Part shown: positions 9,659 through 62,616 of the stretch, one piece after another
How positions within the stretch are numbered: position 1 is the first letter of the stretch
Layout: every line of letters starts with the position of its first letter
DNA from: Blastocladiella emersonii ATCC 22665
Taxonomy: Eukaryota > Fungi > Blastocladiomycota
Assembly: GCA_025594325.1 (NCBI GenBank)
Contig: JANHCV010000008.1
Location: 1,488,001 to 1,552,000 of the forward strand
DNA length: 64,000 bases
Direction: 5' to 3'
Program-made: the position numbers and the translations under genes
The notes under the pieces: model-generated
What the model was told of the DNA's origin: nothing
Seen by the model: only the letters and a program-made list of their open reading frames with translations
Database searches by the model: none

Positions 9659-9681
9659 GTCACATGATACTTCGACGCGTC
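9659..9681 (-). promoter_or_regulatory. Bipartite motif GACGCG-N7-ATCATGTGAC, 96 bp upstream of the L2 ATG
   Basis: Minus strand reads GACGCG TCGAAGT ATCATGTGAC; same spacing as six other copies. Confidence 0.7.
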
Positions 9682-10121
9682 TCGCCTAGTTCGCTCGCTT
9701 GGTCGCGTCGCCGACTGTTGATGTTGCTCATCTCAATAAACAATTCCGTGAGTTTGGTGTCGCTGTGCGGCGATATGATGTGCTACAGGGTCACCAAGCA
9801 CCGGCATGCGGTGGTCGGGGTTTGGGCGGGCGAGCTCAAAGGTCGTCGGTGTTCGAATCCTACCGAGGGGAGGGACCCGGGGCCCTTTTGCTGCCCGTCG
9901 CAAGACACTGGATTATTTTTCCCGCGCCGAGAATTGCCCATAAAATTCACGATCGCAGCCGACCTTGCAGCATGTCTGCCCGGGTTCATTTCCGCTTGTC
10001 CGTTGCGCAAACTAGGCTGACATGAATTTTGAATAGTTGATGGCCGCCATCTTGCTCAAACGAGATCTCTACACGGCGCCATTCTTCGAAATCGCACTGT
10101 GCACATTTTCAGGCTGTATAT

Positions 10122-10620
10122 TCAAACTCGCACCGCCTTTGGTGCAACGGCGCGGTTGCGGAACACGAACCGGTTGAAAATCTCGAGGAGCTCGCGCCGC
10201 CTAAACGATATCCACAGCATCAACTTGCCTTCGTTCGCTCCGAGAACTGCAATGAGCGGTGGCGTCTCGAGAATTTCGGGCAACCCATCCTCGGCAGCGC
10301 GCAACAGGCAGTTGAGGGAGACGCGAACGGGCCCCGCGGCGCGGACCAGATAGTACGCGTAGAAGGCAGGGTCGATGGCCCGATACTCTCGAGGCGCGGT
10401 ACCGCGCGTCGGGTGCTGGAACTGGGCGCCCTCAACGTGCTGGCGGATCGCTGGGTTGACAGCGTGGATCCACCGAAGGAGCGGGTATACGAGCTGCTCG
10501 GCGGCCGTCGGCGCCTGGCCGAACCGCCACACGCGATCGACAGCGCGGCCGAGAAGTAGCTCGCCCGTTGTGGTGAATGGTCGTGCCGCGTGGCTCAGCG
10601 CGAGACGTTTCAAGTCAAGC
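10122..10620 (-). CDS. ORF remnant of unknown function
   Basis: Protein-like composition, contains RAVDRVWRFGQ; no clear start codon; the upstream part of the listed ORF is a tandem repeat. Confidence 0.3.
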
Positions 10621-10628
10621 CACGTCCC

Positions 10629-10685
10629 ACGCGACGCGTTTCCCATCGCGTCACGCGACGCGTTTCCCATCGCGTCACGCGACGC
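10629..10685. repeat. 2.4 x 24-bp tandem repeat acgcgacgcgtttcccatcgcgtc
   Basis: Perfect units at 10629 and 10653, plus a partial unit at 10677. Confidence 0.95.
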
Positions 10686-10911
10686 CACTCGGACGCGTTC
10701 CCTCTCCGCGTCACCGCTGCGCGACGCGTCAACTCGGCCGCGGGCCTCGAACCGAGCCTTCTCTCCGTCTGCTGTTCTACGAATCACACGTAACAGTCGA
10801 TCGGAGCGTCGGTTCGGAGCTCGAGTGCTCACGTCGTTCGTCGCGCAGATTCTGTACTAGACCTCTTGCAGTACCTCTCGGTCCCCGGTCCCCCAACACC
10901 GTGACCGTCAT

Positions 10912-15421: not shown

Positions 15422-15465
15422 GACGCGTCGGGAAAACATGTGATATGCGGTGCGGATCATGTGAT
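15422..15465 (+). promoter_or_regulatory. Bipartite motif variant GACGCG-N7-AACATGTGAT plus a second ATCATGTGAT, upstream of DUF4470-like copy 1
   Basis: 15422-15444 and 15456-15465; ATG at 15537. Confidence 0.65.
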
Positions 15466-19026: not shown

Positions 19027-19974
19027 ACCATGCTTTGTTTTGATTGACTCCAACCTGTTTACCGTGCTCATTTTGGAGCGGCGAGAGAAAGCGGGTTTGC
19101 TCGACTGCCAATGAGAAAACACGAGAGCACACACTTGGCACAGGTGAACCAGGTAGTGGTGCTCAGGACTTAGTCGAAGTCAACCGTTACCTTGTCGTGG
19201 CGTCTGATTTGAACGGGCAGAGATGCCCGCCCGCCATTTATGGCGCAGAGAGGCGACTTTTCCAGAGAGCGTGCGAAGGACACGATTTCACCAATACCCA
19301 AAAATGACGACTGGCAGCCGCTTTTTTTTGCCATCAGGACCAACACGGCCGGGCCTACGTTCAGCGCGACACGCGACGGCTCGAGCGGCGGGACGCTGGG
19401 AGGCGCGGCGTGAGACGCGACGATCAAACACGCCATGCCACGTGACCGAGTTCGCAAGCGAATGCGGTCGATCATCCGTGCGCCGAGTCGCACTCGCTGC
19501 TCTCTCCTAACCGCCTGCACTACCATGAAGCAAAAGAAAGGAAAGTCGTCCAAGACTAAGCGCAAAGCGGCCCGCAGTCCCTCTGTCGGCGCTGCCCGCG
19601 ACGACCCGTCGCCCCCGCCCGCTTCGGAGTCGCCGATGCCATCCGCTGCCGCCTCGGTTCCGCTCGCACCGCCGACGCAGACCAGCGCGACACTTGCACT
19701 CGACAACGAGACGGACCCGTACCTTCCCTACGGCAAGTCGTTCTCGCGCGACCTGTTCCTGTACCACAACCCGCGTGAGAGCAAACACCTCGGCGCGCTC
19801 GTCTTCCAGTGCGGCGACCTGCGCGACGTTGCGCACACGGTCGGCGAGGCCAGGCGCAAGTACGGCACTGCCAACCTCGATTTCGTGCTGAGCGACACCC
19901 ACTTTGAGGTGCTCGCGCGCAACCTGCTCGTCCTCCGTGCCGTGGCGCAGACCAAGATAACCGATCGTGCCGCC

Positions 19975-20862
19975 GTCTCGGCGCTTACTCGTCATGTCGG
20001 CCAGCTCACCTACTCGCTGTACCTCGACCCAACGACGCGCGCGTTCTGGGCCGAGCAGATGCGCGCGTGTCTCGCGGCCAACTGGACCACACCCGACGCC
20101 CAGGTCCGCGTCCTCGACGATGCGACGCGCCGCGGCGTGCGCGCGTGTTGGGAGTCGTGGCTCGCCGTTAGCTGGTCGCCCGCTAAGTTTGACCAGACCC
20201 GGACCGCGTTCTACAACACGGCGGTTCGCCCCACCGAGGTCCCGAGCCACATGTCGCACACCAAAGTCGCGGTCCACCGGACGATGCAGCGCCTGCGCTT
20301 CGAGAACATGACCAAGATGGAAAAGTTTGACGAGCCCGATAGCCTCGAGCGCGACGTGACCGCGCTCGCAACCACGGGTCACTTCTTCCTCGATTACGGC
20401 GGTATCGACAAACCCAAGGCGCCTTGTCTTGGCGCTCACTCGCCATGTCGGCCAGCTTTCCTACTCCAACTACCTCGGCCCGCTGACACGCGCTTTCTGG
20501 GCCGACCACATGCGCGCCTGCCTCGCGACCGACTGGCCCGCGCCTGACGCCCAGGTCTGCGTTCTCGACGACGCGGCGTACGCGCGTGCTGGGGGTCGTG
20601 GCTAGCCGTGAGCTGGTCGCCCGCCAAGTTTGACCAGGCCCGAACTGCTTTCTACGACACGGCGCGCTCCCGCAAAGTTGAGGATACCACGTCGCACACC
20701 GAGGTCGCAGCCCGCAACACGATGCAGCGCCTTCGCTCCGAGAACATGACCAAGCTGAAGAGGTTTGGTGCGCCCATTAACCTCGAGCTCGAACTGCGCT
20801 CAATCGCGACCGAGGGTAACTTCTTCCTCGATTGCAGCGGTGCCAGCAACCCTACTGCGCTC
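19975..20862 (+). repeat. Intragenic tandem duplication, period ~451 bp, roughly 80% identical by eye
   Basis: gtctcggcgcttactcgtcatgtcggccagc at 19975 versus gtcttggcgctcactcgccatgtcggccagc at 20426; colinear for about 430 bp. Confidence 0.9.
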
Positions 20863-28051: not shown

Positions 28052-28744
28052 CGATTAGATCTGCGTGATATGAATATGGGATCCATGCGTATGTGATACC
28101 GAAGATGAACTGCCACCAAAAATCCTGCACACGTCGTTCTTCGCTACTTGCGCCGCGATGCGGCCAATTAAATCCGACGCGTCAGACATTCAAGTGACGA
28201 GGCGGCAGATGGGATGCGCGAAAGGCCGAGTAATAGCTCGCGTGCGACCTGAGCACGCTGCTGTCATACTGGATCTTGCATCGCTCGCCTCGCTTTCTTG
28301 CCCGGGTCCTGCGCTAGGCAACATCAAGGCAACCGAGTTCGCCACGACAAGAGGTTTACAGACTTGACTCTAAGGGAGCGCACCTAACCGACTGGGGCGC
28401 CGCTGTTCCCGCGAAAGTTTTGCAAGTTCGTCCCAGCGCATGACAGTCCGCTTCGCAAACGTGTGCCTTACTGCTCAAACCCTTCAATCGATTCAGCTCC
28501 CCAAGGCCGTGCGCAAGATCAATATTACCACGCCCATTCTCAGTTACCGCAGCAGACAGGTGATTGCTGCTTGGCTCCCGGACCCGGCTGGAGACCCTTG
28601 CATTTTCAACAACGTTCACGCGCCTCGCAGCGGGTGCTCGCTTCTCTCGTTGCTGCCCCGCCAACTCTCGCAAGTTTTTTATGCATACCTCTGGGATCGC
28701 TGAGCGCCTTTGTGGTTGCCGTCCGCGTTCCTCGCGGGATGCGA

Positions 28745-28778
28745 GACGCGACGAGAAATCACGTCAGCATCACGTGAT
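28745..28778 (+). promoter_or_regulatory. Bipartite motif variant GACGCG-N7-ATCACGTCAG followed by ATCACGTGAT, upstream of array copy beta
   Basis: GACGCG ACGAGAA ATCACGTCAG; ATG at 28851, 84 bp downstream. Confidence 0.5.
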
Positions 28779-44726: not shown

Positions 44727-44860
44727 GGCAGTGAGAATGCAGCGAACTCACAGGAGAGAGATTGATCAGAACGTGACGCGTCGACGCGTGCTCAAATTCG
44801 CGTGACGCGCCGCGGACAGTTCGCACTCCCCCCGCCGCCCACCAGCGATCACGGAAACAA

Positions 44861-46646
44861 ATGAAGCTGGCCCTCGCCGAGATCATCGAGAAAGTGCTCG
44901 TCCGCGCCGTGCACCTGCACGACGACCCCAACGACGTCGCGGGCCTGAGCGAGTATGCGCGCGTCCTGCCCGCGGACTTGATCCCGGGCGTCGTTCGAGC
45001 CATCTTGAAGCGCTCTCCTAAGCTGTCCATGGACACAGCGAGCACGCGCGGCGCCGTGAAGGTGCTCGACAAGTGGCGCGACTCGGGGCTTCCACTCGTC
45101 TGTCTACTCGCACGTGGCGCTCTCGGGCGCGAACGGCAAGTCGCTTGAGGCCATGGAGTGGTGGGGCCGCTCGGGTCTCCCGATCACGCACCCGCAGTGC
45201 CCAGGCGGTTCGACTATGGATGTGCTGAAGCGCCTCAACCTCGGCCAACTCGCCGCGCTCTTCCCCAGCTGCGTACGCTGACTCGTCACACTGATCGAGT
45301 CACGTCCACTCACACTCTCTCGACTGTCTAGCCTCGCCCTCCCGTGGAGGCGCCTTTCGTCTCCATCAACGACGCGGTGGCTGGCATCTCATCCGGCCAG
45401 CTGACCAAGGTCGCCTTCCGCAACGAGTACTTTTCGCTTGATGCCGTCGCGGCACTGAACGAGGCCATGGCGAGCCCGAACCAGGCGCTCCGCTCGCTCA
45501 AGCTTGAGCGCTGCGCCATCGACATGCCGCGCCTCATGCTGCTCCGCTTGCCCGAGTCGCTCACCAAGATTGAGTGGTCGCAGGGCTGGAGCGCGCCGCA
45601 TGCCGATCCCGGCCAACCCAAGTCGTGGTCGTGGCCGCCGCACCTCGAGTCGCTTTCCGTCACCTGGTCCACGCCGCGCGGGCACGCTTTGCTCCTCCTT
45701 TCGTCGCTTCCCTCGACCCTCACCTCGCTTTCGCTGTGCAACATCTCGCTCGAGCGCGACGCGTACCCGCACCTGGCTTCGCTCTCGCCCAGCATCACCA
45801 GTCTCGCCATGTCCAACTGCTTGCTCACGGACGACGCGTTCGCGGTGCTCTTCCCGCACCTGCCGCCCGGCCTGGTCTCGCTCAACATCAGCAACGACCA
45901 GCTCACCGCCACGCAGCTCGGCGCGCTTTACCACCATTTCCCGCCGACGCTTCGCTCGCTCGACTTGTCCGCGAACCATTTGGACCGCAAGACCAGCGAC
46001 GCGCCACTCGGCTGGTCGTTCCCCGCTGGGCTCGAGCGACTCGAGATGTCGTCTTGCACGCCATACGCGCAGGACCTTCCCGAACGCACCGGCACGCTTA
46101 GCGTTCCGCAACTCGAGCTCGCTGCGCTCATCGCGGCGTCGCTCCCGCCCAACCTCGTCTCGCTCGATCTCAGCGTCACGCCCCTGTGCGGCCAGCCCCA
46201 CTTTGACGTGTCCGAGGTGATCACGATGCTGCAGCTCCATTTCCACGAGGGCGGGGCGTCCTCCAATTACATGGCGCTTATCGCTTTGCGTCTGGCGCCC
46301 ACGCTGCGCGAGCTCAAAAAAAAACCTCAAGTGGACGTGCATTGGCGCCGCGGGCGCACAGCATCTCGCCGAGCACATGCCGCCGCAGCTCGAGTCGCTC
46401 GACTTGTCCCAGACGAATCTCGACGACGCCGCGATCCAGGCCCTCGCCCCCGCGCTGCCTCAGACGCTCAAAAAGGTGTGCGTGAACTGGAACCCGTTCA
46501 CCGACGTCGGCGCGTTGGTGCTCGCCGCATATCTTCCGAACGAGCTCGAGGAGCTTCGCGTGGATATCGTCGAGCTCAACGCCGAGTCGATTGAGCTGCT
46601 TCGCACCAAGGTCGCTGACGGCGGCACCTTCACGTCTGGCTTTTGA
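44861..46646 (+). pseudogene. LRR family copy L3 (closest to L1), two frameshifts
   Basis: 4-bp gtct duplication near 45100; intron about 45273-45330; frameshift in an A9 run at about 46316-46324. Confidence 0.8.
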
Positions 46647-46740
46647 TAAGCTATCTTGATCGCACCTCGAGTCAAGTCGTACAATACCACTCGGTATCCT
46701 CTCATCTATTCACTGCGTCGATCGTGCGCGCTACTCGCCC

Positions 46741-47344
46741 TCACTTGGGGTCCAGCGGAGTGCTAAAGTTGGGAAACAGCGGCGGCAGCACCGCGCGCTT
46801 GAGCTCCGATTTGAGGCCCGCAAACGACACGGCCGTGGTCGCCGCAAACGGCCGCGTGCCCGGCCCGGTCTGCGGGTACATGTTGATGTCCGGGATCGAC
46901 TGGTCGACCATGGCCGCGCTGCAGTACTCGAGATACTCGGCAGTTCGCATCAGCATGCTCGCCGGACCACTTGATGATCGGGAACAGCCGCTTGCACATG
47001 CGAAAGTACGCGGTTTCCGACATTTCAGCGACCTTGCGCAGCCGTTGCACGTTGGCGCGCGCGGCCGCAGTGCCTGTCGACTTAGACTGGAGCCCCGGCA
47101 CGTACAGGTTGCTGACATCAAGCGCGGGCGTGAGGCCCTCGGCCTTGCCCTGCGGCGGGATCACGACGGGGCGGTTCACGATTATGACGGCGATCAGCCC
47201 GCGCAGGGTCTCGGGACTGGCGAGCTTGATGGCACACGAGCCAACCATGCGGCCGCGGAGTCCATGATCTTGAATATGAGCGCCACGAACAGCTGCTGCT
47301 GCTGCTGCTCGTCGCCCTCGCCACGCCACGTCCCGTTCTGTCAT
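46741..47344 (-). pseudogene. Degraded ORF of unknown function
   Basis: Two overlapping protein-like frames joined by a frameshift near 46970, with a poly-Q stretch upstream; no recognisable motif. Confidence 0.3.
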
Positions 47345-48700
47345 TACGTAGCTAGCCTCGCGCCATGGCCAACGTCAAGCTCACGCGCACCCACGTCGGC
47401 CATCAGCTTTGACGCGCCGCGTCTCTCTTGTCAGTTTACGCCGCAGACACAGCCGCAGACACACACGCAGCCGCGTAATTTTCTCCGCGCATCCTCGCCT
47501 TGGCCACCACGATATTGCAAAAGCCGTTGTTCCATGCAGCGATGCTGCGGCAGGCGATCAACCAAAACTGGATTGCAAACAGTACGCGCACGGCGGACGT
47601 GCAACGTATCCGCAAGGCAGCGGCCAGACGCGGCCGGACAGCCGGACTCGGAGCAGTGTCAAGGACGCCAAGCGCGGCCGGCCCTCGAGCGCGCGGCCGC
47701 GAGAGATTACGCGCAGCAGCGAGGTCTTCGCGAGACTAAGGTCGAGGAGCAACGCGATGCACCCCTGCCTCGTATTCGCACACGTTGGCGCGACGTCGCA
47801 CGTCCCCTTCCCCTGACATTGCGCGCTCACCCACCGCTACCACCTTGAACGGTCGGATCGCTTTTGCCTCACGGGCGAGCAACACTCGCCGTGGGCGCTG
47901 CATACTACGCCGACGCGGGCAAGCGGTGACGCCACGGCTGTGACCAAGAAATCGACCCTGCATGTCGGTCGCGGAGCGACTTCGAGCCGGCGAACGCGAC
48001 CCCCAAGCGCGAAGCTGCGTACGACACCGATACAGGCGATCAATGAAGCCGAGCGTATGAGCGAGAAAGCGGCCAAACACATCGGTCGCAGAGCAACTTG
48101 AAGGCGGAGAGCGCAACCCGCTAGCGCGAGGCCGCGGCGCGTGCCCGCTCGCGGAATGAGGTTTGCGGGACCGTGGCTGTCGAGAGGTTCACGGAGTTGA
48201 TCCGCTGCATTAGCTCTCGTGAAAGCATGCTAGGACGACGTCTCAACGCTGCGGCCCTGAGCCCGCGCACTTGAGCGCCGCTACCGCCGTGAGCGGTCGG
48301 ATCGATTTCGCCCCACGAGCAGTCTCCCGCAATGATCGCGGCGCACGGCGCCGATGCAAACGCTCGGTGAAGCTGCGGTCCATGAGCGAGAGAGTGTCCG
48401 AGCGCTGCCGGCAGCGGCGCGGCCTCGCGGCGGCGGCGGCGGCGGATGCGAGCCTGGACCGCGACGCAGCTCAAGTCGGCTTCCAACAAGCTCTCATTAG
48501 GACCGCACGGCGCGCTTGGTTGATGGCATAATGCAGCAAGTCGTTCAGCTTCATGGTTCACGGTTCATGGTTTCTCATAGTTGGGTCGAGAGCCGAGATC
48601 GCCAGCTGGCTCGCCCACCACTTCGCTCACCGCGACAACCACGTTGCAAGAAATCGGCCCCGACCCCGCCCATCCATACATTCCAAACCACTCCTCATCA

Positions 48701-50467
48701 TCATCCGTGCATCTGCTGCTGCCTTGCGGCCTTGAACTTGGACACGCGGCGGGGCGGGGACTGCGTCGTCGCGGTCGCGCTGGCCGGCTGCGCCTGCGCC
48801 GTTCCCGCCACCGTCTCGGCGACGGCGGCGCGCTCGACGACCGCGCCACGGACGGGCCCGACGTCCTCGCGGGCGGGCGCGTCGGGCGACGAGACGACCG
48901 TCGACGCCCCCGAACTACTCCCCGCATCCCCACCACCACGCACGATCCGCGCATTTCCCACGGCCTCGCCATCACGCAGCACCGGCGTCTCCCCATCCTC
49001 GCCCTGGGTCCACGCAAACTCCTCGCCGGCGACGAGCGAGTCCCAGCGCGGGGTATCCTGCGGGACCGCGTGGGCGGCGACGTCGTAGACGGTGCGCGAG
49101 AAGCTCTTGTGTGGGGTCTCCGGGTCGGCGGTGGTCGGGTCGGCGCGCGCCATGAGCTGCGAGACGAGATGCGACTTGCGCGCGTGGTACGCCGCGGCGA
49201 TCTCGCGGCGGTGCATGGCGTCTTCGACGGCGCCCTCGTCGAACTCGGTTGCGGGCGGGGTGCGTTCGACGACGTCGCCCGTGACGGCGGGTCCGCGGGC
49301 GGCGGGTTTGGCCTGGCGGGCGAGCGTGGCCGAGGAGAAGGACGGCGGCGGGGGCGGGGGCAGCGGGGAGTCGCGCTCGACGACGTCCGGCATCACGGTG
49401 AACGCCTGGCGCACGGGCAGGGGTTCGCGGTCGTCGCCGCTCCACTCGTCGTCGTCGTCCTCGTCGTCATCGCCCTCGGAATCGGTCTCGCCGGCGGTAT
49501 CGGCCTCGTCGAGGGCGAACCGGACGTGGCGCGCGGACCCCGCGCTGTTGAGGCTGCCGGTGGACCCGGCGCGGTCGCGCGCTCCAATCGCCCCGTTGAG
49601 CGAGGAGAAGGACGGGGTCTGCTTGAGGCTCGACTTGCGCGGGCGGAGGGCCGGGTCAACGACGGGCGCGGGCGCCGGGGCGGGGACGGCGGGTGGCGAC
49701 GAAATACTTGCGCGCGACACAGGCTCCTCCCCCTCCTCCTCCTCCTCCTCGTCGGGCAGCGACGCGAACAGGTTGTCGAGGTACTTGCGGTCCTTGTTGG
49801 ACGCGACGGCGCGCTGGGCGCGGTCGAGGAGGCGTGCGGCGTCGGCGAGCGCACGCGCCTTCTGCGCGGGGTGCACGTTGGCGGCGGCGGCGGCGATGGT
49901 GGCGGGGGCCGTGTACGCCTCGTGGATCGCCTGGAACGGCAGGCCCTCCTCGTTGAGCTCGACCGAGCCATCGACGATGCCGGCGGCGGAGGCGGGGGTG
50001 AGGGTGCCGAGCGGCGCGTGCGGCGGCGGCGGCGGCGGCGGGACGGCGTTGGGCGGGAGGTGCAGCGGGGTTCCCACATCGTCCTCCTCCTCCTCTTCCT
50101 CTTCCTCAGCGGCAGGCGCAGCGGGTGCGTCCTCGCCGAGCACGGCGCGCGCCTCGTGGAGCTTCTCGTCAATCAGGGCGATACGGCGGTCGACGATCTC
50201 GACGGCCTGGGCCGCGGACCGCTCGACGAACCAGTTGTCGCCCAGGAGCACGGTGATCTCGTTGGTGTGGACGAGGGTGCCGGGCATGAAGGCGAGCGGG
50301 CCGAGCGGGACCATGACCGGGTGCGCCGTCTTGGCCGGCAGCGCGGCGAGTGTCGGGCGCAGCGCCGCGTAGTCGTCGCGGAACCCCGCCCACTGCGCGA
50401 GCGTCGCCGCGGCCGACTGGCGCGCGCGCGCGTCGGGGCCGTGTGTAGTCGGAGAAGGTTGATTCAT
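48701..50467 (-). CDS. URI1: Unconventional prefoldin RPB5 interactor (URI/Bud27), 588 aa
   Basis: Alpha-prefoldin core VMVPLGPLAFMPGTLVHTNEITVLLGDNWFVERSAAQAVEIVDRR, acidic tracts, C-terminal RRVSKFKAAR. True start taken as ATG 50467, not the ORF-track start at 51322. Confidence 0.92.
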   Translation of the reverse strand: MNQPSPTTHGPDARARQSAAATLAQWAGFRDDYAALRPTLAALPAKTAHPVMVPLGPLAFMPGTLVHTNEITVLLGDNWFVERSAAQAVEIVDRRIALIDEKLHEARAVLGEDAPAAPAAEEEEEEEEDDVGTPLHLPPNAVPPPPPPPHAPLGTLTPASAAGIVDGSVELNEEGLPFQAIHEAYTAPATIAAAAANVHPAQKARALADAARLLDRAQRAVASNKDRKYLDNLFASLPDEEEEEEGEEPVSRASISSPPAVPAPAPAPVVDPALRPRKSSLKQTPSFSSLNGAIGARDRAGSTGSLNSAGSARHVRFALDEADTAGETDSEGDDDEDDDDEWSGDDREPLPVRQAFTVMPDVVERDSPLPPPPPPSFSSATLARQAKPAARGPAVTGDVVERTPPATEFDEGAVEDAMHRREIAAAYHARKSHLVSQLMARADPTTADPETPHKSFSRTVYDVAAHAVPQDTPRWDSLVAGEEFAWTQGEDGETPVLRDGEAVGNARIVRGGGDAGSSSGASTVVSSPDAPAREDVGPVRGAVVERAAVAETVAGTAQAQPASATATTQSPPRRVSKFKAARQQQMHG

Positions 50468-50658
50468 TGCGACCAGTGGCGTGGGGAGAGGGAACGGGGA
50501 GAGCGGGAGGGAGGATGAGAGCGAACTCTGACGGGAAGGCGGGCGGCCGGCCGATCGCTCGGAGACCGCGTCAGGTGACCCGACGGCGCGTCTTTCGTCG
50601 CGTCTCTGTCTCTCTCCTGTTCGGTTGCATCCCCTCCATGTAAGCGCTGAGAGAAAAC
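50468..50658. promoter_or_regulatory. ~190-bp bidirectional promoter between URI and the Reeler-like gene
   Basis: Divergent ATGs at 50467 and 50659; purine-rich and pyrimidine-rich tracts on opposite sides. Confidence 0.6.
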
Positions 50659-51272
50659 ATGATCGGCTGGATGAACCTGGTGCTCGCCGCCGTTCTGGCG
50701 CTGGCCCCACTCCTGGCCGCGGGGTTTTCGGGCAGCCTCTCGTTCTGCGAGACGACCGGTCCGTCGCTCTGCCTTGCAACTGCCCTCCCGGCCAACACTC
50801 GCTCCATGTAGAGCAGGACATGGTGAGCGACATGGGCGGCCGCGGCTCGTCAGCGCTCGGCTTCGCCCTGCAGACCACCAACGCGACGTCCAACGGGACT
50901 CTGACCACCATCGCCCTCCTCGCGACGGACCCAGCCTCCCAACTCCTGCGCGGCCTGCTCCTGTGGGCGACCGACGCCGACGCCAAGCGCGTCGGGACGT
51001 GGAAGCTGCGCGACGGGAGTGCCGGGTACACGCTCGTCGACGCGTGCTCCGGCGGCGCCGTCTCGCACACGTCGTCGGCCGCCAAGTCGTTTGCGGCGGG
51101 CGCGGCGACGAAGCCTGACGGGTTCGTGCTCACGGTGCCTGCGGGTGCCAAGGCGCCCGTCGTGGTTCGCGCGGTCGCGGTTGGGGAGGCGAGGAGCAAG
51201 TGGCAGGTCGTGCAGCCGGTCGCGGTGGCGGGTACGGTTGACGTGCTCGGGGGAAGCGGTGAAGGGGGCTGA
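50659..51272 (+). CDS. Secreted Reeler-domain-like protein, join(50659..50758,50812..51272), 186 aa
   Basis: Hydrophobic signal peptide; 53-nt intron restores the frame; RGLLLWA..RVGTW..C..VSHTS pattern. Confidence 0.65.
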
Positions 51273-51552
51273 AGGGGCTGTGTAGTGCTTGGGACCGTGC
51301 CCAACACGACCACCAACAACAACTCGACGACGCCGTCGAGCGCGACCCGGCCGTGGGCTCCGCCTCCTGCGCTTCTTGCCGTAATCGTGGCCGGGCTCTT
51401 GACTCTATAGACTCGCCTTCTTCTGCTCCCTGTTCTGCTCCCCCTGAGTTCCCGCGCGAGCGACGCGTTGCCGCGATGGGCGGGACGCGGTCACCTGATT
51501 CTTCGCGATCGACCCGCCTCCTCCCCCGCTCCCCCCACCCCATGCACACACC

Positions 51553-53052
51553 ATGAAAAAGCCGTTCGCACCACCTGCAACCCACACTCAGACCTCGGGC
51601 GCATCCTCCTCCGCGGTCGGCCCGTCCGCGCTGCCGCCCCTCGCGCGCGCGCCGACGCGCCCCCACCGCCCGGCCACTCCCCCGCCACCCACTCAGCCCA
51701 CGTCGACGACCGCGCTCTCGGCCGTCTTCCTGCTGCAGGGCGTCGGCATGCTGTTCCCGTGGAACGCGCTGATCTCGGCCCCCGACTTCTTCCGCGCGAA
51801 GCTCGACGGGTCGCGGTTCGCGCACTCGTTCGAGAACTGGTTCTCCGTCACGTTCCTCGTCGTGAATCTCGCCACCATGGCAGTCGCGCTTGCGCCCGTG
51901 TCGCCGCGCACCGACCGGATGTTGGCGGTGGGCTCGTTTGCGGTGAATGCGGGCGTGTTTGTTCTCTTGCTCGCGATTGCCGTCGGGTTTCTCGGGGTGA
52001 ACCCGGAGCTCGTGTTTGGCGTCGTGCTGGCGGGCGTCGCGGCGAGCGGCAGCGCGACGGCGCTTGTCCAGACGCACCTGTTTGCCGTCGCGAGCCGGGT
52101 CAAGGGGGCTGCGTACACTAGCATGGTACGCTTTCCCCATCAACTCACTCGCACGGCGACTTACTCGAACCCGCACACCTAGCTCCTCGTCGGCCAGGCC
52201 GTCTCGGGCGTGACCATCTGCCTGGTCCAGCTCGCCCTCCAACTGGCCCACGTCGAGCCCAAACCCGCCGCCGTCTTCTACTTTTCGTCCGCCATCGTCG
52301 TCGTCCTCGCCTGCCTCCTGCTCTACCTCCCGCTCGGCAAGGCCGTCGCCGCTACCGAGATGCCCGACTCGGACGACGAGGGGGACGACGACGACGACGA
52401 CGCGTCCTCGCTCGCTACCTCGTCCATCACCGAGCACCACACCCTCTTAACGGGAACCGACCTGGTGACCCGCCGCCTCGCCCTGTTCCGCGCCGCGCAG
52501 CCGTACGTGTGGGCCGTGGTCCTCGACTTTACCGTCTCGCTCGCGCTGTTCCCGGGCTTCACGTCGCTGCTCCGCGCGACTTCCGGGACCCAGTCGACCT
52601 TCACCGCGGCCGCCTTCCTCGTCTTCAACCTCGGCGACACCCTCGGCCGCGTGCTCCCGTCGCTCCTGTCCCGCATCTCCCCCGTTTTTGGGGAAGGCGG
52701 CGCCGCGTTCAATTCGCGCACGCTGATCGCGGCCTCGCTCGCCCGGTTCGCTTTCCTGCCCGCGTTTCTCCTCCTCCCGCTCATCGACAGCGTGCGCAAG
52801 AACCCGCTCGTCCCGACGTGGACCGGCGCGCCGCCCGCGGTCGTGCTGCTGATGATCGGGGCGTTGGCCGCCACGTCGGGGATGGTGCCCACGCTCGCGC
52901 TCGCGGGGGCGGCGAATGTGGAGGTCGCGGGGAGAGCGATTTCGGCGGCGGACCGCGGGGTTGTGGGGAGGATTATGACGTTTGCGATGTTGCTGGGGCT
53001 CGCAGCGGGTGCGGGCTTTGGGTTTGTCGTGGTGGGTGCCGCGACGGTGTAA
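51553..53052 (+). CDS. Equilibrative nucleoside transporter (SLC29/Fun26 family), join(51553..52125,52183..53052), 480 aa
   Basis: GVGMLFPWNALISAPDFF, VGQAVSG, FTVSLALFPG and FNLGDTLGR motifs; about 11 hydrophobic segments; 57-nt phase-0 intron. Confidence 0.92.
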
Positions 53053-53325
53053 ATATACGAGATCGCATGGCTTTGATGGTGAAGGGAGACGGTGCGCTCG
53101 CGAGCAAGGTCGGGACGCGCCGCGAAATCACGCGCGGGACGCGTGCGCGTCCCGCAACTCTCGCGTGGGTGCAGAGTCCCCCGCCCGCCCGCTCTCCCGT
53201 CCCGCGAACTGAATGTAACCCATGCAACCACCCGCCGACCTCCCGCTATTTGTGCTTGAGAACACACTCGCGCTCGCCGCCCCGCGGCCGATGCTACCCG
53301 CGCAGTGAAAAAGGTTTGACTATAT

Positions 53326-53510
53326 CACTTTGGGGCGGTCACTAAGTCTCGGCGCTAAGGGTCGCAAAGTGGCTTAGGGCGGCCAAAGGGTCGCTAGGGG
53401 TCGCTAAGGGAGGGGAGACTTTGCGCGGCGGGACAAAGGTACTTTGAGCGGCGAGCGAACTTTGGGGCAGCGCAAAGCGGCTTAGCGTGTCCGCGACAAA
53501 GTCGCTTAGT
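53326..53510. mobile_element. Probable DNA-transposon terminus with subterminal repeat array (CACTA/EnSpm-like)
   Basis: Begins CACT; caaagNNgcttag x3 (53365, 53473, 53497), actttggggc x2, gtcgcta(a/g)ggg x2, in both orientations. No matching other end found. Confidence 0.5.
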
Positions 53511-53671
53511 CTCACTCTGCTGAGGGCCGGCGGCGGTCGCGCCCGCTCAGTCTCGTCGTGCTGCTCAGAGTCCGTTGGGCGTGGTGTAGGAACCGACTAT
53601 TACTACGATCCATCACTCGATCATCTCAATCATCACCATCACCACCGTCGTCGCTGTCCTCCTCGCCACGG

Positions 53672-54862
53672 TTACCGCGGCCGTGGCCGCCGCTGCGGCC
53701 CGTTGTGCCGGCCCCACGCTCGTCGAGCGGCTCCATGTTCGGGTCGCCTGCGCCGGCCGTCTCGAGCTCGCCGCGCTGCGGGATCAGGTACGAGCGAAAC
53801 GATCCAGACAGTCTCGTTCGGAGCGGGTGCCCTGTCGGCCGCCGGCGGTGGCCGCTGCTCGTCAGGGCACACGCACACGCGGTCGCGAAGAGCGCGGACC
53901 GGTACGACGATCGGCTGCGCGACGGGGACGTAGCACGCGCGGCCAAGGCCCGCCGTCTCCGCTCGCGCCTTGTCCTGCGCGCTGAGCCGGCGGTGGTCCA
54001 CCGGGTACACGGCGATCGGCCACAGCGCAGCGAACACGACGCCGCCGAGCTCGAAAAGGTCGGAGATGTAGCCAAAAATTGACGACATGGCCGGGTCCGC
54101 GTCCGCGTTAGGCACCACAAAGCGCGCGGAGCGCGGCAGCGCGGGGAATGCACCAGGAACCGCAAACACCGCGTTGGCCACCGTCGTTGGGATCACGGTG
54201 CGGACGACGGCGTCCTTGCTGCACTGCAGTGGAACACCGGACCGCGTCGCCGAGTGGAACACGGACCCGGCGGTCGCGGAAGGCCTGCGGTTGAGCACCA
54301 TGCCGTCAAGTCGCAGCATGCGGATGAACCACGAGTACCCGGCCGAGGAGGTCGTAGCGGCCGATCCATCGGGCTCGCGGAGCACCGCACGCGCAAACGC
54401 CTTGAACGCCGTGGCGAGGTGGTTGGGGAGCAGGCGCGCGCGCGTGCTCCGGTGCTCGACGAGGGCGTCGCCCGAGTCCGACCCCCGTCGACCGGGCAGC
54501 AGCGTAGCGACGCGCGGCTTGGCGGTCACGGCGGCGCGGATCGTCTGGTCGAGCCGCTGCATGCGGCCGAAGCTTGACGGCTTCCAGATCCGGCATGTCG
54601 CGGCCGCCCGGCAGGCGGGACTTGATACCGCGCACGGGCCACGGAGCGCCCTCAACGGTTCATTGGAGTAGGGGATCGTGACGCAGAGCTTGACTTTATT
54701 CGCGTCCTCAACCGTGTACGGCGTCCAGCAGGCGCGGCACTGCGGCAGCCTGCCGATGCATACGCTCATGGCCGCGCGACGGCGGAAGAATGGGCGACGG
54801 TCGCGCGTCGGAAGGCGGAGCGCGGCGAGAGCCGGATGGCCGCTGGCATCGTCGCGGGTCAA
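53672..54862 (-). pseudogene. Possible C-terminal remnant of a CACTA (Tnp2-type) transposase-like protein
   Basis: WFIRMLRLDG..., IFGYISDLF..VFAAL.., CY..QPIVVPVRALRDRVCVCP resemble the C-terminal pattern of fungal CACTA proteins; points toward the repeat array; no catalytic core seen. Confidence 0.35.
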
Positions 54863-55228
54863 ACGGGGCCCTGCGCTTCCCGATGCCCTTGGCGTTGTTC
54901 ATGGTGTCGATGCATAGTTTGCAGCAAGTGGTGGTGCATTCGGTCGACAAGTGTGTCGGCGGCGGGGGCTCGGTGGGGAGAAGCGGCTGGCTGGCGAGGT
55001 GAGCGGCGCGTCGCGTTTCGGGGCCGCGCCAACGCCAAGTCCCGGCGGACTCTGCCGTTTTCACCGCGCCCTCGGCTACCCGCGGGCTCTCGCTCCCCCG
55101 TCGCGACTACGGAAACCATGAAACCACGTATTTGAGCTCTCCCAATTCTTGCAACGCACGCAGCACACGCACCGGCGACTGGACCAACCACGGCCGAACA
55201 GGCCTTCGTGGACTTTACGCAGCGTCAT

Positions 55229-56416
55229 GCGCGACGAGCTACCGCCTCTCGTCGCGGCTTCCGTCGCCGAATCGGTCGACGACGCGGTTGCACCACTCGG
55301 AGAGCAGGCTCACGGGCGGGGCCGACCATGTCGCCGCCGCGGGCGCCCAGGCGCTCGAGCTCACTCAACTCGGAGCGGAAGAGCTCAAGTCCTTCCCCTC
55401 GCGCGTCCTGACCCGCGTCGTGGAGCGCACCGGCGCCGATGCAGACGAGCAGCGCAAGCAGACGCTTAAGACCAAAAGGTGGAGCGCCGTGCCAAGAAGT
55501 ACTTGGACGCGGCGCATCGCGAGGCCGAGAGCGCCAAGTCGCGGGGATCGCACCACGGTCCCGCGTTCGTGACGCGCATCAAGGCGAGCGCCAAAGGTCG
55601 CGCGGCCGCCACTTCCTCGGCCGTGCGGGACGCCGCTCGGTCGCCCTTTGTTCTGCGCACCTGGGCCGCCCGCATCATCCGCTCGGTGACCCTGGAAACT
55701 TACATTGGCGACAGCAGCGAAAGCGGGCTCGAGCTCGACGACACGTACCCAGGCTCGCGCCAGCTGCAGATGCCGTTCGTCTGGTACCTCAAGACGCGGT
55801 TTGACGGCACAATGCGCGACGGGTCGTGCGGCGGCGGCGACGTGCGGGCGCACCCGTTTTCGGCGCCGGTTCTCGCGTACATCTACCGGCCCGCGCAGCC
55901 GCGGAGCGGGCCAGTTGTTCAGGCGTTACACCCGTTCGCCGACGCGCCGCCGGGCTCGCTGCATGCGTCGTTCGGGCTGCGAGCGGTGCCCGAGGGCCTC
56001 GGGTGTCGTGAAGTCCGCACGCAGAGCCTTCAGCGACAAGCGCGGAAACCGCGGGAATTGGTCGCGTTGTGGCGAAGCTTGTGGTCAAGGTGCCCGAGTT
56101 TGTTGTGCGCACGTTTAATCCGCGCGCGATCCTGGTTCCGTGGGTCTTCGTGCTTCTCGAGCCGCTGGTTGATCGCAGCTCTCTCGCTAATCGAATCTCC
56201 AATCATGCGGACGATGCGCTTTACAACGCTGTTGAGAACGGCGAGTACGCGTTCGCGCGAGCGTTGGTCCGCGTCCGTACGCCGTCAGCCGCGGTTCGTC
56301 GTGAGATCCGTGCACTTTATTGTTCCAGTGAGCTTGGCGACGCGGGCGAGGTATTAGAGAGCGCTGTTCGCGGCTTGCCCGACGTGATTGAAGAGGTTGA
56401 GCGGTCATCTCAATAG
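55229..56416 (+). pseudogene. Frameshifted ORF of unknown function
   Basis: Three successive protein-like frames (55132, 55479, 56069) linked by apparent frameshifts. Confidence 0.35.
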
Positions 56417-57053: not shown

Positions 57054-57076
57054 GACGCGACGGGAAATCATGTGAC
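57054..57076 (+). promoter_or_regulatory. Bipartite motif GACGCG-N7-ATCATGTGAC, 78 bp upstream of L4
   Basis: GACGCG ACGGGAA ATCATGTGAC; ATG at 57154. Confidence 0.7.
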
Positions 57077-57153: not shown

Positions 57154-58925
57154 ATGCAAACACATGTAACTTGTCGCAACTTGAACTTGAGCATCCCGCA
57201 CATCGTTGAGCGCGTTCTGTGCTACGCCGTCGAGGCGCACGACGACCCGAACAATCTGACGGGCCCTGCGCAGTACGCGCGCGTCATGCGACGGGCCGAC
57301 GTCCCAGCCGTTATCCGCACCATCTTGCTCCGTTGCCCGCTGCTTTCCATGGACGAGGCGAGCAGACGCGGAAACGTCGCTTTGCTTGACCTGTGGCTCG
57401 AGTCGCAGCTTCCCTTGTACTATACGGCCGAGGCGCTGGAAGGTGCAGGCCGTGCATTGCAGTTCCAGGCCTTGAATTGGTGGCGCGACTCGGGGCTTCC
57501 CCTTCCGCTGTACACAAATCGATACGGCCCTATACAGCCGAATAAAGCTGTCAAAGGCATTTTGGGGGCTTCCCTCGTTACTCAGAACGTTCACGGCACA
57601 AAGAACGTGTTTTTTGTGCTGTTCTTTTCGTGTGAAGGGATTCAAAAGCAGAATCTCACCCCTCGGGCGGCGGGGCGCCTTTGTAACTGCCGCCTAACAC
57701 GGACCCCGGCGACAACGACATACTTGAGAAGCACTCTTGGCTCCTTCGATGGAGTTTCACAACCGATCTTGTTCGGATTTCGAGTGGTCGCTTGACGGCC
57801 GTCGGAATCTCGGCCATCAACGAGTTTCTCACCTCTGTACATGGTCAATCGGTGGATACCATGATCTTTGCCCCGTGCAACATGACGGTTGCCGGCGCTC
57901 GGTCACTTCGACTTACGGATCGTGTTCGTTCGCTTTCATTCACATATATGCGCCATGATTTGCCGCTCGAGGCTCCGAGGAATGAATCGCTTCCGCCGGG
58001 GCCGTCGTTTCCCGCTTCCATCACAAGCCTGAATTTCAGTCGGTCCTGGATCGATCGTCGCTGTGACGTGGACTTCGGCAGCCTGATTCCGGCCAAGCTC
58101 GAGTCGCTGACCTTCACCGAGTACAACTTTTCTCTGCTCCCCAGCTCGACCGCCTTCTTCGCCTACTTCCCGGAAACGCTCCACACGCTTCACTTGGAGC
58201 GGTGCTCGTTCGGGCGCGACTTGGCTTCCAATGCTATTCAAGCGAGTCCAGTCTTTGCCGCCTTGGTCCGCTCGCTTCACCGATCGATCAAGTCCGTTAA
58301 ATTGGCTTCGTGCGGGTTGACCTCGGCCGATATTCAAGTACTCGTACCACGACTTCCCTCCGTGCTACAGGATCTCGACCTCTCTGGCAACAAGCCTGCT
58401 AGCGGCACGGTTCGGTTCCTGGTGCCGTATATCTCTCCACCACGCTTCGCTCGATAGACCTCGAGTCCTGGGTGCTCAACGAAGTCGATCTCGTGTACCT
58501 TGCGCGCGCTCTCCCGCGTCAACTCCACACAGATAAGCTCTCAAGCAGTACCAACGACAAGATGGTCATTCTCGTGCAAGCTCCAGCTCGACGGGGATTC
58601 GTCCTCGCTTTGGGAAACTTGCCGAAACTTTGCCACGTTTGGCTGAGCGATCTGGGCATCAACGACGACGACCTCGCGCTACTGCTCTCCTTGCTACCCA
58701 AGCGCCTCGACTCGCTTGTCGTGCACTTCAACCCGATCACCGATGCGAGCCTCCGACCCTTGCTTGACTTTGCTAACGCGCGATCTCGAAAGGTGAAGTT
58801 ATGCATCAGCGACACCGAGCTTTCGAAGAGTGCCATAGCGAGGAGGAAGCGGTGCAGGAAACTGGCCATGGACGACTCGACCGACGATTTCCGCGCGGTT
58901 GAAGCCATACTTGGGATTAATAAAC
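57154..58925 (+). pseudogene. LRR family copy L4
   Basis: IPHIVERVLCYAV...SMDEASRRGNVALLDLW...LNWW N-terminus; LRRs in frames 57792 and 58472; frameshift near 58440. Confidence 0.75.
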
Positions 58926-58997: not shown

Positions 58998-59020
58998 GAC
59001 GCGACGAGAAATCATGTGAT
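58998..59020 (+). promoter_or_regulatory. Bipartite motif GACGCG-N7-ATCATGTGAT, 124 bp upstream of the SNF2-like gene
   Basis: GACGCG ACGAGAA ATCATGTGAT; ATG at 59144. Confidence 0.7.
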
Positions 59021-59143
59021 GCAAGAAGGGGGGAAATGCGTCGCCGCTCCGCGCACTCCTCCGCTCCCCCAGCCCCCATATTCACCCTCTAACGCATCGA
59101 ATGAACTAACTAGACTTGCTGCAACGAAATCAGCATTGCTATT

Positions 59144-62100
59144 ATGACTTTTACACACGCGCCGCCGCCCCGCAAGTCGGCCCGCCTGCTGGCCAAGTCT
59201 GCCGCCACCTCGCGAGCAGTTCAGGCCGGAGCCGAGCCCGCTTGCGAGACACCGGACATCACCGCCGCTTCCCGAACTGCCTTGTCACCGGCTCCTCCGC
59301 ATGAACCCCTCTCGTCAGCGAAACGCACCATGGGATTCTTTGGCGAGATTGTTAGCGATAGCGACTCGGAGTCCTTGAGCGAAGCCGACGAGCTTGTCTT
59401 CCGTTCTGCAGCTTACGGCCAGAGCTTTTTGAAATCTCCTCGCTTGAATCCCGATCCAGATGCCGCCGCCGCTGCTGCGCCAGCCCTATTTGTGCGGTGC
59501 GCAGTTGATGCGCCCGTACCTGCAACCTTCACTGCAGCGAGCTCGCCGGAGTACCGCGCTGCCCGCTTGCATGCTGAGCGCGCTGCTTGCGGTTGGTGAG
59601 TCCCCTTTGACGCCGAACAGTGCCTTGACTCGAACTGTGAACCGCTCATGGAAATGCCGGACGCGCTTGCGCCCGAGACTCTTGTCAGTGAGTGGATCGA
59701 CAGCCAAGTTACGCGGTTCGACCAGCCTGGTATGCAGCTCGCTGGGACTCGGTGCAACGTACAACTGACACTCGTCCACTGCGCTATTAAATCTGTTTCT
59801 CGGTATGGATACGGTCGTGCTTGCGAACCGCTTTCCGATGCCCGAAGCGCTTCTTGACAGGGAGAAGAAGGTGTGGCTTGACACTACATGCCCCGTCCTT
59901 TCCGAACTAGATGTGCACCGCGAGGCCGTGTTCCGCCTCGAGCGCGTGCACCACGACGGCCTTCACCAGAACCTTCGCGTCTATGATCGCACCGCGGTCG
60001 AGTACGTGAAGTACCGCACTGCCAACCTCGCACCACATAACCCGTCGCGCAACTACACGCTTCGCGACTTTATGCGAAACATCGAGGCCGACCCGTACTT
60101 TCGGCCGCGCCACCGCCGTGGTTGGGGTATTTTGAAGAAGGCGGGCTCCATTGCTGACATCAACGTGTTCTCGCTTGCCTCGGACGCTCCCTTTCCATCA
60201 GCGGCTTTCAACGAGCCGTACGATTTTGCGCCTTGGAATGTGAATCTTCCGCCTGGCTCACCTAACTACGAGCCGCCGCAATCGTGCACTGCTGGCTCGG
60301 TTCTTATGCCAGCATCTCGGGAGCTCTCCAGCCGCCCCTTTCTCGATCTCGACCCAAGCTGCTCGCGGTACCTCCGGCTGGTGCTCCGGTTGGTCTACGG
60401 CGAGCAGTACCCGCACTCGGGCAAAATGTTCACGTACCACCTCGCCGCGTATTTGTGAACTGCCACCGCCAACCGCGATCTGTGCGATCCAGGCCGACGC
60501 GTGGCAGCGCGTCAACTTCTGCGCAAGCTTTTCCGAGTGTATCCTCCCGCTTTGATCTTCGATCGCGATGCACCGAACCACCATGAGCCTGTGAAGAAAG
60601 ACTTTCCCTTGCACCCACTTCCGCCTGGCGCGAGTCTATCTGGCTGGCTCGATGAGCTCGAGACGAACCCCGCGGCGAGGACCTTGCAGCTTGCTCCCCG
60701 CGACCGCACGGAGCCTTACATCCGGCTTGGCCCCGGCGGAATGGTGTACAATTACCTCACGGGCGAGTTCACATCCTCCTGTCCTCCGACTTGGCTGCTT
60801 CCGCCTCCCACGCCCGTGCCATTGAGATTCGGGTCGCGTTTGTTCGAGCGACTCGCGGCACACCTGCGGCTTACGCGGGGGTACTTGGTTTATCCGCGCC
60901 AGAATTTACGCCCGAGGTTCCTGCGCGGCTTCGCGGCGATACCGCTTTGCCTGTTCCTTCAAAGGCGATCCTTGTGCTGCTTCCTTCAGCGCTGGCCATG
61001 GATAAATGGAACGCGGCAGCGCAGCAGATTTTTGGTCCTGCTGCTCGGATCATTCTCTTACGCGACTTCGCCGAGTATCGCACCGCGACGCTGCAGGATC
61101 TTCAGGACGCTGACGTCGTGCTTCTGAATTCGTCCATCCGTCATGGTGATGATGATAGTGTCGCATCGACTCATGATTCGAAGCAATCTGGAGCACGCGA
61201 TCTCGTCATCAACGAGTCCAACCTCGGTTGGGCTAAGCTGACAGCGCTTTACTACCGCCGAGTGATTTTCGGTTCCAAGGCTTCGTCTTTCTGCGGCCTG
61301 CGGGCCAGGCTCACAATCGACCTCGCGTTCCACGGTGCTTCCATGTTCCACGGTGTTTCCGTGACCGTGGGAGACATTCAAAAACGGATTGCCCACATCT
61401 CCGAGTTCTACTTGTCTATTGATCCTGAAATTGCTCAACGCTTGAGGGAGCAGTTCACTCGAAAGCTCGCGGCTCCTGCTCAGTTTCATCGGACCAAGCT
61501 TGTGTCGAGTGCTTTGGGCCCGCTTGCCGATCGTTCGAATAACGACACTTGCAGCTCGCTTGCCCTGCGCCAGAGCCCGCTGCCCTCGCCAACTTTAACG
61601 CGACTTGGCACCATGTTCTGCGGCCGTGTGCCGCCTGGGAAACACGCCACAGCCGATCTCGTTGCCTTCGCGGTCGAGCAGCTGCGCCAGCTGTCCCCAA
61701 TGCCGCACGATCTCGAGTGGGACGACTGGCTCAAGTGGGCCCGCTTGGTCGGGCTCGCCCGGTCCGACCTCCCCGTTGCGCGCCCTGTGAGAACACCAGA
61801 CGTGCCGGTCGCTTTCACGAATAACGCGAGGGACAACCAGATGAGGTTCCGGCGCAACCACATCCCGTTACGCCCGTTGCCTGGGCCGAACGCGCGGTTC
61901 TTTGACTTTGCTCAGCTGCTTGTTGAGGCGCGCGCCGCACTCGCTGCTGGGATCACGTTGGTCTTTGTTCCTGGTGGGATGAATCCCGAAAATCCTGGTC
62001 TCGCTTCCGCCGCGCTTTCCGCGCCACATCTTGACTACGGCGCCAAGGTGCAGGCCGTGCAAGACGTGTTGCGCGGCAGCAACGGCGAGCGGACCGTCGT

Positions 62101-62506
62101 TTGGTGTCAGTCTCCGGTCCTCGCAGCGCTCATCTCGCGCGCGATCGCCACGACCACTGACCTGCCCTTCATTGACAGTTTCCCGCCAATCCTCGCCGTG
62201 GCGGAGCGCGCCATGACCGAGTTCAACGAAGGAATGCACCCAGAGCCCCGCGCAATCATCCTGCCGCTTCCCGACGACGTGCGGGCAGCTGTCAGTGCGC
62301 GACTCTTCCCCAACCGACTCAACATGCTGTTCGTGCATCCAGTTGTCGGCAGTTCCGAGTCCGAGACGCTCCAGCTCGTCTACCGGGCGTTGCGCATCGC
62401 AAAGGACGATAACGTCGCTGTCCGGTGGCTCGTGGCCAAGGGTACAGTTGAGGAGAGCCTGATACGCCCGATCGTGGCCAAGTTCCGGTTCGGGTTGCCG
62501 GAGTAA
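59144..62506 (+). CDS. Degenerate SNF2-family (Rad5/16-like) protein; multi-exon, exon structure unresolved, possibly a pseudogene
   Basis: In SNF2 order: YNYLTGEF, AILVLLPSALAMDKW (Ia), DADVVLLNS, YYRRVIF (II), YGAKVQAV..ERTVVWCQ (IV), QLVYRALRIAK..VRWLVAKGTVEESLI (VI and C-terminal). No GKT, DExH or RING visible. Apparent frameshift near 60830-60940. Confidence 0.6.
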
Positions 62507-62593
62507 AGCCTTTATCTATCCGTACAACTTGTATAAACATCGCTTTGCTTTCTGCCCGCAATACTTGCCTGAGGAACACAGAAGCACGCTTTC

Positions 62594-62616
62594 GACGCGT
62601 TCCGATATCATGTGAC
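62594..62616 (+). promoter_or_regulatory. Bipartite motif GACGCG-N7-ATCATGTGAC upstream of L5
   Basis: GACGCG TTCCGAT ATCATGTGAC; the position homologous to the L4 start codon is 62692. Confidence 0.7.

Follow-up and report, generated by a model that had tools for sequence, protein, structure and literature searches.

Is a short two-part sequence that recurs before unlike genes in a 64,000-nucleotide stretch of the Blastocladiella emersonii ATCC 22665 genome (contig JANHCV010000008.1, positions 1,488,001 to 1,552,000; hereafter the window) a shared control element? The sequence, GACGCG-N7-ATCATGTGAY, joins a CGCG box to an E-box across a spacer of seven nucleotides, and an earlier note on this DNA had proposed it as a composite site for two cooperating factors. 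The sharply spaced two-part motif is confirmed as real and not the product of chance, and it is most likely a shared promoter switch that stands before unrelated, species-specific gene families.

Fixed spacing and anatomy of the element

The five exact copies reported earlier are all present in the window (Table 1), and 100 dinucleotide shuffles gave zero matches. The two variants reported with them are genuine as well, the copy at 15422 having one mismatch and that at 28745 three to the strict pattern, or two if Y is allowed in the E-box. These seven copies stand, but the list proved incomplete, as further copies were found at 41767, 28176, 44677 (minus strand), 50570 (minus strand) and 19414, the last a degenerate copy recovered by a position-weight scan. 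At three mismatches or fewer, the window holds 12 matches where 1.5 are expected. The spacing of seven nucleotides is exact in all copies, including the one at 50570, in a region (50567–50579) where the spacing had been thought to differ.

Of the nine ATCAYGTGA boxes in the window, five follow GACGCG at exactly seven bases, and the neighboring gaps are empty. The sample was enlarged by seven loci of the same genome (L001–L007; 153 kb), reached via paralogues of two downstream families, to a combined 217.6 kb. Over this length, the distance from GACGCG to CAYGTG shows 16 cases at a gap of nine, which is equivalent to N7, against about 0.36 expected per gap, as befits the fixed-spacing composite that had been proposed. 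Smaller peaks at gaps of 20–21 represent a second E-box (a CACGTGA box in a subset of the copies) that follows the first by 11 bp, or one helical turn, and precedes four unrelated gene groups, namely those at 28745, 41958 and L005 6934 and the DUF4470 family.

Two other spacings were noted. A peak at a gap of 24 (six copies) was rejected as a real spacing class, since it consists of antisense coding sequence common to DUF4470 paralogues; the case shows that paralogy is able to fake a spacing peak. Four copies on three contigs, none of them in the window, share the form GACGCG-NN-GCGCCAC-W-CACGTG with a conserved spacer and a gap of 10, and may represent a distinct sister motif built from the same two halves. 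At 51484–51499, GACGCG directly abuts GTCACCTGAT (a gap of zero) within the span of an annotated nucleoside-transporter gene, where the pair could sit in an intron or form part of an internal promoter.

From 23 non-redundant copies we derive the consensus (G)nGA-GACGCG-WCG-N4-AT-CAYGTG-AY. The distal half is near-palindromic and MluI-box-like (GACGCGTC), reading ACGCGT in 15 of the 23 copies and ACGCGA in 6, and the proximal half is the near-palindromic E-box TCAYGTGA, with 14 bp between the two centers. Because both halves tend to palindromes, dimeric proteins that read double-stranded DNA are suggested. The likenesses to known sites drawn in the earlier note also hold: ACGCGT is the MluI cell-cycle box (MCB) (PMC4862756), and the reverse complement of ATCAYGTGAY, RTCACRTGAT, fits the RTCACRTG consensus, to which all exact copies conform. 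The spacer of many copies, CGGGAAA or CGAGAAA, is one mismatch off an E2F/SCB-like site; SCB (CGCGAA) and E2F (GCGSSAAA) sites overlap the MCB core ACGCGT (PMC4862756).

Promoter position and the unequal halves

The E-box half faces the gene wherever a downstream gene can be identified. For the seven copies known earlier, the end of the motif lies 71–123 nt before the start codon, in keeping with the gene orientation and the distance of about 100 bp first described; the range of 76–124 bp given at that time holds except for the gene remnant behind the copy at 41958 (71 nt). In L001–L007 the start codon is mostly found 100–125 nt past the motif, with a few copies outside this range or without a clear open reading frame (ORF). 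At loci with public gene calls (L001–L007, and 50570 in the window), all copies fall outside called coding sequence (CDS). A pyrimidine-rich, mainly C-rich tract follows 70–100 nt past the first base of the motif (0.65–0.69 versus a baseline of about 0.48), and an A-rich zone lies beyond it at the start codon. Since many fungal promoters have C/T-rich tracts where transcription starts, the C-rich tract, which begins about 50–75 nt downstream of the element, is probably the transcription start zone here, and the motif is predicted to sit some 50–90 nt upstream of the transcription start.

An element of fixed orientation within about 125 nt of the start codon would, if untranslated regions (UTRs) are long, itself be transcribed, and could then act on RNA as a 5'-UTR element that governs translation or stability. 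We regard this as extremely unlikely: both halves are DNA palindromes that match known protein-binding cores (PMC4862756), and the C-rich tract, typical of fungal start zones, is located downstream of the motif.

The two halves differ in their distribution. In the 250 nt upstream of 30 annotated genes outside the motif-linked families, GACGCG is 1.8-fold enriched (40 observed versus 22.8 expected) and occurs in 19 of the 30, whereas TCAYGTGA occurs in none (0/30); the best full-motif matches before these genes carry 4–7 mismatches, or 5–7 before those with a known conserved domain. The 217.6 kb contain 24 TCAYGTGA octamers, 14 of which lie exactly 8 nt after GACGCG. Three others are scored as second boxes of composites, a fourth (L005 9739) comes after a composite of degenerate form, a gap-10 variant accounts for one, and two lie beside AACGCG, no more than two bases off the canonical distance. 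Because GACGCG alone is common before ordinary genes and TCAYGTGA is absent there, the former looks like a generic promoter element of the B. emersonii genome, and the E-box appears to be the specific half, one that practically never stands alone.

These counts also bear on a reading in which the halves are sites for constitutive promoter-opening factors, of the kind that Cbf1, Reb1 and Abf1 are in yeast, with the exact composite merely the strongest version of a general promoter grammar and no regulon behind it. Such a reading would account for the enrichment of GACGCG before non-family genes, for the C-rich tracts that precede the ATG there too, and for a degenerate N7 copy with a C-rich tract at the usual distance before a URI1/prefoldin-like gene. 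It would not account for an E-box half missing from all 30 promoters, for full-motif matches no better than four mismatches, or for a housekeeping-type locus (L003; 21.7 kb) that has no N7 copy, and we judge it unlikely. The earlier note had raised the same caveat, which applies to GACGCG alone and fails for TCAYGTGA and for the full composite.

Flanks and downstream gene families

Outside the motif the copies have little in common. In MAFFT alignments of 400-nt windows around the copies, nothing aligns beyond about 25–30 bp save between LRR paralogues (see below), and when the flanks of the 16 best copies (250 nt upstream, 70 nt downstream) are compared by BLAST, similarity is limited to the pair L004 13805/L006 3846. 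The 1.5-kb upstream flanks likewise yield no homology among copies by BLAST, and an independent genomic contig in DNA reads contains the 23-mer followed by unlike sequence. The extended flanking homology by which, according to the earlier note, a small transposon would betray itself is thus not seen in these flanks, and a transposon or terminal-repeat relic is ruled out by the unlike flanks of independent copies. The exceptional pair arose by recent duplication of a DUF4470 promoter and has the same motif and flanks in both members, in which the motif lies 334 nt (L004 13805) and 114 nt (L006 3846) from the MKQKKK start, L004 having about 220 bp extra.

The motif is conserved where its surroundings are not. 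In an alignment of promoters from 12 DUF4470-family genes, whose proteins share about 42–60% identity with the window copy, conservation is confined to three islands, namely gcGAGACGCGTCGggAaATCACGT, a further box reading CCCACGTGA, and the start context CACTACC-ATG-AAG-CA. With the motif as anchor, top-base frequencies average 0.76 across it and 0.60 across the second box, as opposed to 0.42–0.46 in the flanks. Between the LRR paralogues at 57054 and 62594, both halves are perfectly kept and all seven spacer bases differ.

That the motif has no present function, having been copied passively with duplicated genes or a small mobile sequence and being too young to have decayed, is very unlikely in our view, as the DUF4470 promoters cannot be aligned save for the motif islands at 42–60% protein identity, spacer bases vary while both halves are kept, about nine unrelated downstream groups carry the motif, and the copies show neither flank homology nor transposon-like structure. 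Passive inheritance does fit the facts that most sampled copies precede two expanded families, that several downstream genes are pseudogenes or fragments, and that some duplications are very recent (the L004/L006 pair, and a 5-kb segment with 99.7% identity).

The proposal that the motif is common to sequence-unrelated gene families is borne out by tblastx: when the 2 kb that follow each of 24 copies are clustered, about nine unrelated groups separate. At least four unrelated families carry the motif within the window, and in the wider sample about nine do. An F-box-like/leucine-rich-repeat (LRR) family, so labeled from weak Pfam matches and an Atlas lead, follows the copies at 9659, 57054 and 62594. 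It is also represented by a truncated remnant after 41958, which tblastx placed outside the LRR group and which was assigned from its ATG and 5' sequence by comparison with 57054 and 62594; this copy, formerly described as having no gene, precedes the truncated 5' end of another LRR-family gene. The DUF4470 family, whose proteins start MKQKKK, follows the copies at 15422 and 19414 and seven copies in the added loci, with Pfam DUF4470 matches of E 2e-10 for the gene at 19525 and down to 2e-11 in the family, and a weak match for the pseudogene at 15537. With four LRR and two DUF4470 copies (15422, 19414) in the window, the view that paralogy explains only three copies was an understatement.

The remaining groups are less well defined. 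The labels "Ulp1-like" and "SNF2-like" applied earlier found no Pfam support at E 5, the latter having a weak Atlas lead; the same cutoff gave none for a neighboring "Helitron" label on the ORFs tested. The gene behind the copy at 58998, which has no Pfam match at E 5 and a weak SNF2/Helicase_C lead, has a paralogue in L007 with a variant motif at the same distance from the ATG. A 627-aa ORF with ankyrin repeats (Pfam) follows the L007 3090 copy, and five copies (28745 and four in L002 and L005) precede ORFs in which no domain was recognised, each in a tblastx group of its own. Decay behind the motifs takes the form of a TAA at codon 5 (15537), ACG in place of ATG (62692), truncation (after 41958) and split frames (57154 and 59144).

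Table 1. Motif copies, related spacings and uncalled reading frames; coordinates are those of the window unless a locus is named
Feature	Coordinates	Strand	Context
Exact composite	9659–9681	minus	95 nt to ATG 9563 of LRR-family ORF 8778–9563 (F-box-like N-terminus; family by tblastx)
One-mismatch composite (AACATGTGAT)	15422–15465	plus	92 nt to ATG 15537, DUF4470-family pseudogene
Second full box ATCATGTGAT of the 15422 copy	15456–15465	plus	21 bp past first box
Degenerate composite	19414–19444	plus	GACGCG intact, first box decayed, CACGTG 10 bp further on; 88 nt to ATG 19525 of intact 340-aa DUF4470 gene 19525–20547
Weak two-mismatch copy (ATTCAAGTGAC)	28176–28198	plus	No convincing gene within following 240 nt
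Composite, first box ATCACGTCAG, second box ATCACGTGAT 11 bp on	28745–28778	plus	83 nt to ATG 28851; gene with likely GTATGT...CTAAC intron after start, no Pfam match
Two-mismatch copy (ATCATGTCAA)	41767–41789	plus	191 bp 5' of 41958 copy; missing from earlier note
Exact composite, second CACGTG 11 bp past first	41958–41989	plus	71 nt to ATG 42052, truncated LRR-family 5' remnant
Three-mismatch copy	44677–44699	minus	Opposite strand to 44775 version
Diverged version, GACGCG doubled and CGCGTGAC after it shifted outward by one base	44775–44806	plus	About 55 nt before ATG 44861, annotated LRR gene
Degenerate N7 copy, GACGCG-N7-GTCACCTGAC (E-box CACCTG)	50570–50592	minus	In 190-bp bidirectional promoter; 102 nt to ATG 50467 of annotated URI1/prefoldin-like gene (48701–50467, minus); other gene, nucleoside transporter (50659–53052, plus)
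Exact composite	57054–57076	plus	77 nt to ATG 57154, LRR-family gene split into two ORFs of different frame (57154–57795, 57792–58457)
Exact composite	58998–59020	plus	123 nt to ATG 59144, fragmented gene 59144–62506
Exact composite	62594–62616	plus	75 nt to 62692, LRR-family paralogue, ACG where 57154 paralogue has ATG
GACGCG-N24-CACGTG (rejected class)	window 16813; L004 11313, 6677; L005 13357, 2483; L007 7426	minus	Antisense DUF4470 CDS
Gap-10 class	L002 4214 (plus), L002 6937 (minus), L003 12786 (minus), L007 17568 (plus)	
Uncalled intact ORF, 1143 aa, MKQKKK start	L004 1734–5162	plus	About 100–120 nt past motif copy
Uncalled intact ORF, 549 aa, DUF4470 domain	L006 3982–5628	plus	About 100–120 nt past motif copy
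Uncalled intact ORF, 627 aa, ankyrin repeats	L007 1091–2971	minus	About 100–120 nt past motif copy

The public annotation, an ab initio product of funannotate (PMC9730499), calls seven genes at about 38.7–60.5 kb of the window and misses most of the motif-linked genes there, and in the added loci three intact motif-linked ORFs are uncalled; ab initio annotation seems to miss this class of gene. Conserved-domain genes have a G+C content (GC) of 0.66–0.74 compared with 0.56–0.65 for motif-linked family genes and their surroundings (window 48000–56000 versus the rest; L001–L007), a contrast that points to a lower-GC compartment housing the lineage-specific families. A 5-kb segment at window 42289–47281 recurs with 99.7% identity at L001 7429–12421, on the same contig at a distance of about 110 kb. 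Its boundaries are sharp, it includes an annotated LRR-family gene (window 44861–46646), and it begins 309 bp (window) and 135 bp (L001) downstream of motif copies with unlike flanks; it is one of two things, a segmental duplication or a mobile element of unknown class.

Repeat-protein expansions are typical of giant viruses, and the gene content here (ankyrin, F-box/LRR, SNF2-like, orphans) resembles them. The families might accordingly come from an endogenised giant virus or other large mobile element that brought its own motif, a selfish or foreign promoter code. The nearest Atlas clusters of a 571-aa ORF are viral SNF2 helicases, at weak scores, the motif-linked genes have a GC of 0.59–0.65 versus 0.66–0.74 for conserved genes, and giant viruses (mycodnaviruses) infect related zoosporic fungi (PMC13533422). 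However, no viral hallmark domain was found in about 45 ORFs and all called genes, the copies are spread among host genes on at least three contigs, one motif-linked gene has an apparent spliceosomal intron, and the cited study (PMC13533422) mentions neither Blastocladiella nor a promoter motif, so that a foreign origin seems to us highly improbable.

Searches for orthologues of the motif-linked families outside B. emersonii found none, all matches being ATCC 22665 paralogues. In Blastocladiella britannica, Catenaria anguillulae and Allomyces arbusculus, 42.8 kb around the orthologue of a Suc_Fer-like gene holds no copy and no gap-9 pair, which is weak evidence of absence because the loci compared are gene-dense housekeeping loci. 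The Suc_Fer-like locus of B. emersonii itself has four copies, two of them exact and two weak, which all lie in gaps of the annotation. Full-text literature searches returned the motif strings in no relevant context and no published description, and the B. emersonii genome paper never uses the word "promoter". What the present work adds is the near-obligate pairing of the E-box with GACGCG, and the generic occurrence of GACGCG itself.

DUF4470 forms the N-terminal domain of DNAAF3, a dynein assembly factor (PMC8565470), and URI1/prefoldin-like complexes likewise have a link to dynein assembly (PMC6727741). DUF4470 genes and the URI1 gene both carry some form of the motif here, which may be a coincidence or a hint of a zoospore or flagellum programme.

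A candidate composite promoter element and known systems

We consider it probable that the motif is an orientation-fixed composite promoter element of B. emersonii. In the mechanism that we propose, two dimeric DNA-binding proteins would occupy the two palindromic halves, the distal one a CGCG-box binder that also serves ordinary promoters and the proximal one a Cbf1/USF/MiT-like basic helix-loop-helix (bHLH)-zipper protein. The rigid spacing would reflect direct contact between the two, the E-box factor would work essentially only beside the CGCG factor, and the optional second E-box, on the same helix face, would add to the element. Both factors together would switch on lineage-specific, multi-copy gene families, of which DUF4470, F-box-like/LRR, ankyrin and diverged SNF2-like families bear a label and several have no known domain. 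A stronger proposal, which we advance tentatively and hold to be rather doubtful, is a dedicated regulon of young, fast-turnover species-specific families, in which the bHLH factor would act only when docked beside the generic CGCG-box factor and the genes would be on at one life-cycle stage, for example zoospore formation.

Several points weigh against the promoter-switch interpretation. One is the degenerate N7 copy before URI1, a housekeeping gene. Another is the decayed look of several linked genes, which makes selection on their motifs questionable; the perfect copies may be no more than young. The extra loci were reached via LRR and DUF4470 paralogues, which biases the sample and leaves many copies non-independent. 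From sequence we infer promoter activity, the site of the transcription start and shared expression of the genes, as well as the identity of the binding proteins and their cooperative binding.

As sequence evidence, the architecture, spacing, orientation and position of the element, its distribution over families and its conservation are solid; in kind it would be ordinary, a fixed-spacing composite transcription-factor site. Its interest lies in the setting, as very little is known of promoter architecture in zoosporic, early-diverging fungi. An easily recognised element of 23–35 bp offers a handle for finding both binding proteins and for defining the regulon genome-wide, and would be useful for regulated expression tools in B. 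emersonii, an emerging model for optogenetics and phototaxis. The element is also an example of how gene families that have recently expanded can gain, or keep, a control sequence in common. If true, the dedicated regulon would be a simple, dissectable case of an obligate factor partnership that wires newborn genes into a developmental programme in an early-diverging fungus.

Each half has counterparts in well-characterised systems. The MCB is bound by the fungal APSES factor MBF (Mbp1-Swi6), and the distal half shares with it the palindromic ACGCGT core and the location in proximal promoters; here, in contrast, the core is longer (GAGACGCGWCG) and stands in rigid coupling to an E-box, and the Pfam-tested downstream ORFs include no recognisable cell-cycle genes. 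The yeast Cbf1-Met4-Met28 composite offers a parallel in design, in that a cofactor motif (RYAAT, 2 nt away) beside the E-box defines the target set, although Cbf1 also binds lone sites. The element of B. emersonii resembles this Cbf1/CDEI system in its full RTCACRTG match and in a second element at fixed distance that selects a subset of promoters; it differs in that the partner is a CGCG box 8 nt away, in that the E-box hardly occurs outside the composite, and in belonging to a blastoclad.

The M-box and CLEAR elements of the animal MiT/TFE factors (MITF, TFEB), TCATGTGAC and GTCACGTGAC, have an extended E-box identical to that found here, including the flanking T/A that distinguishes this class of bHLH-zipper proteins. 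The likeness is at the level of sequence; the MiT/TFE family is metazoan and its sites have no fixed CGCG partner. Further analogues are the giant-virus early promoter AAAATTGA and the family-specific upstream boxes of parasite surface-gene families, in which, as here, one short motif stands at a fixed distance before many unrelated, species-specific genes. Unlike these, the element of B. emersonii is GC-rich and bipartite, combines two cores known from classical cellular transcription factors, and occurs dispersed among host genes.

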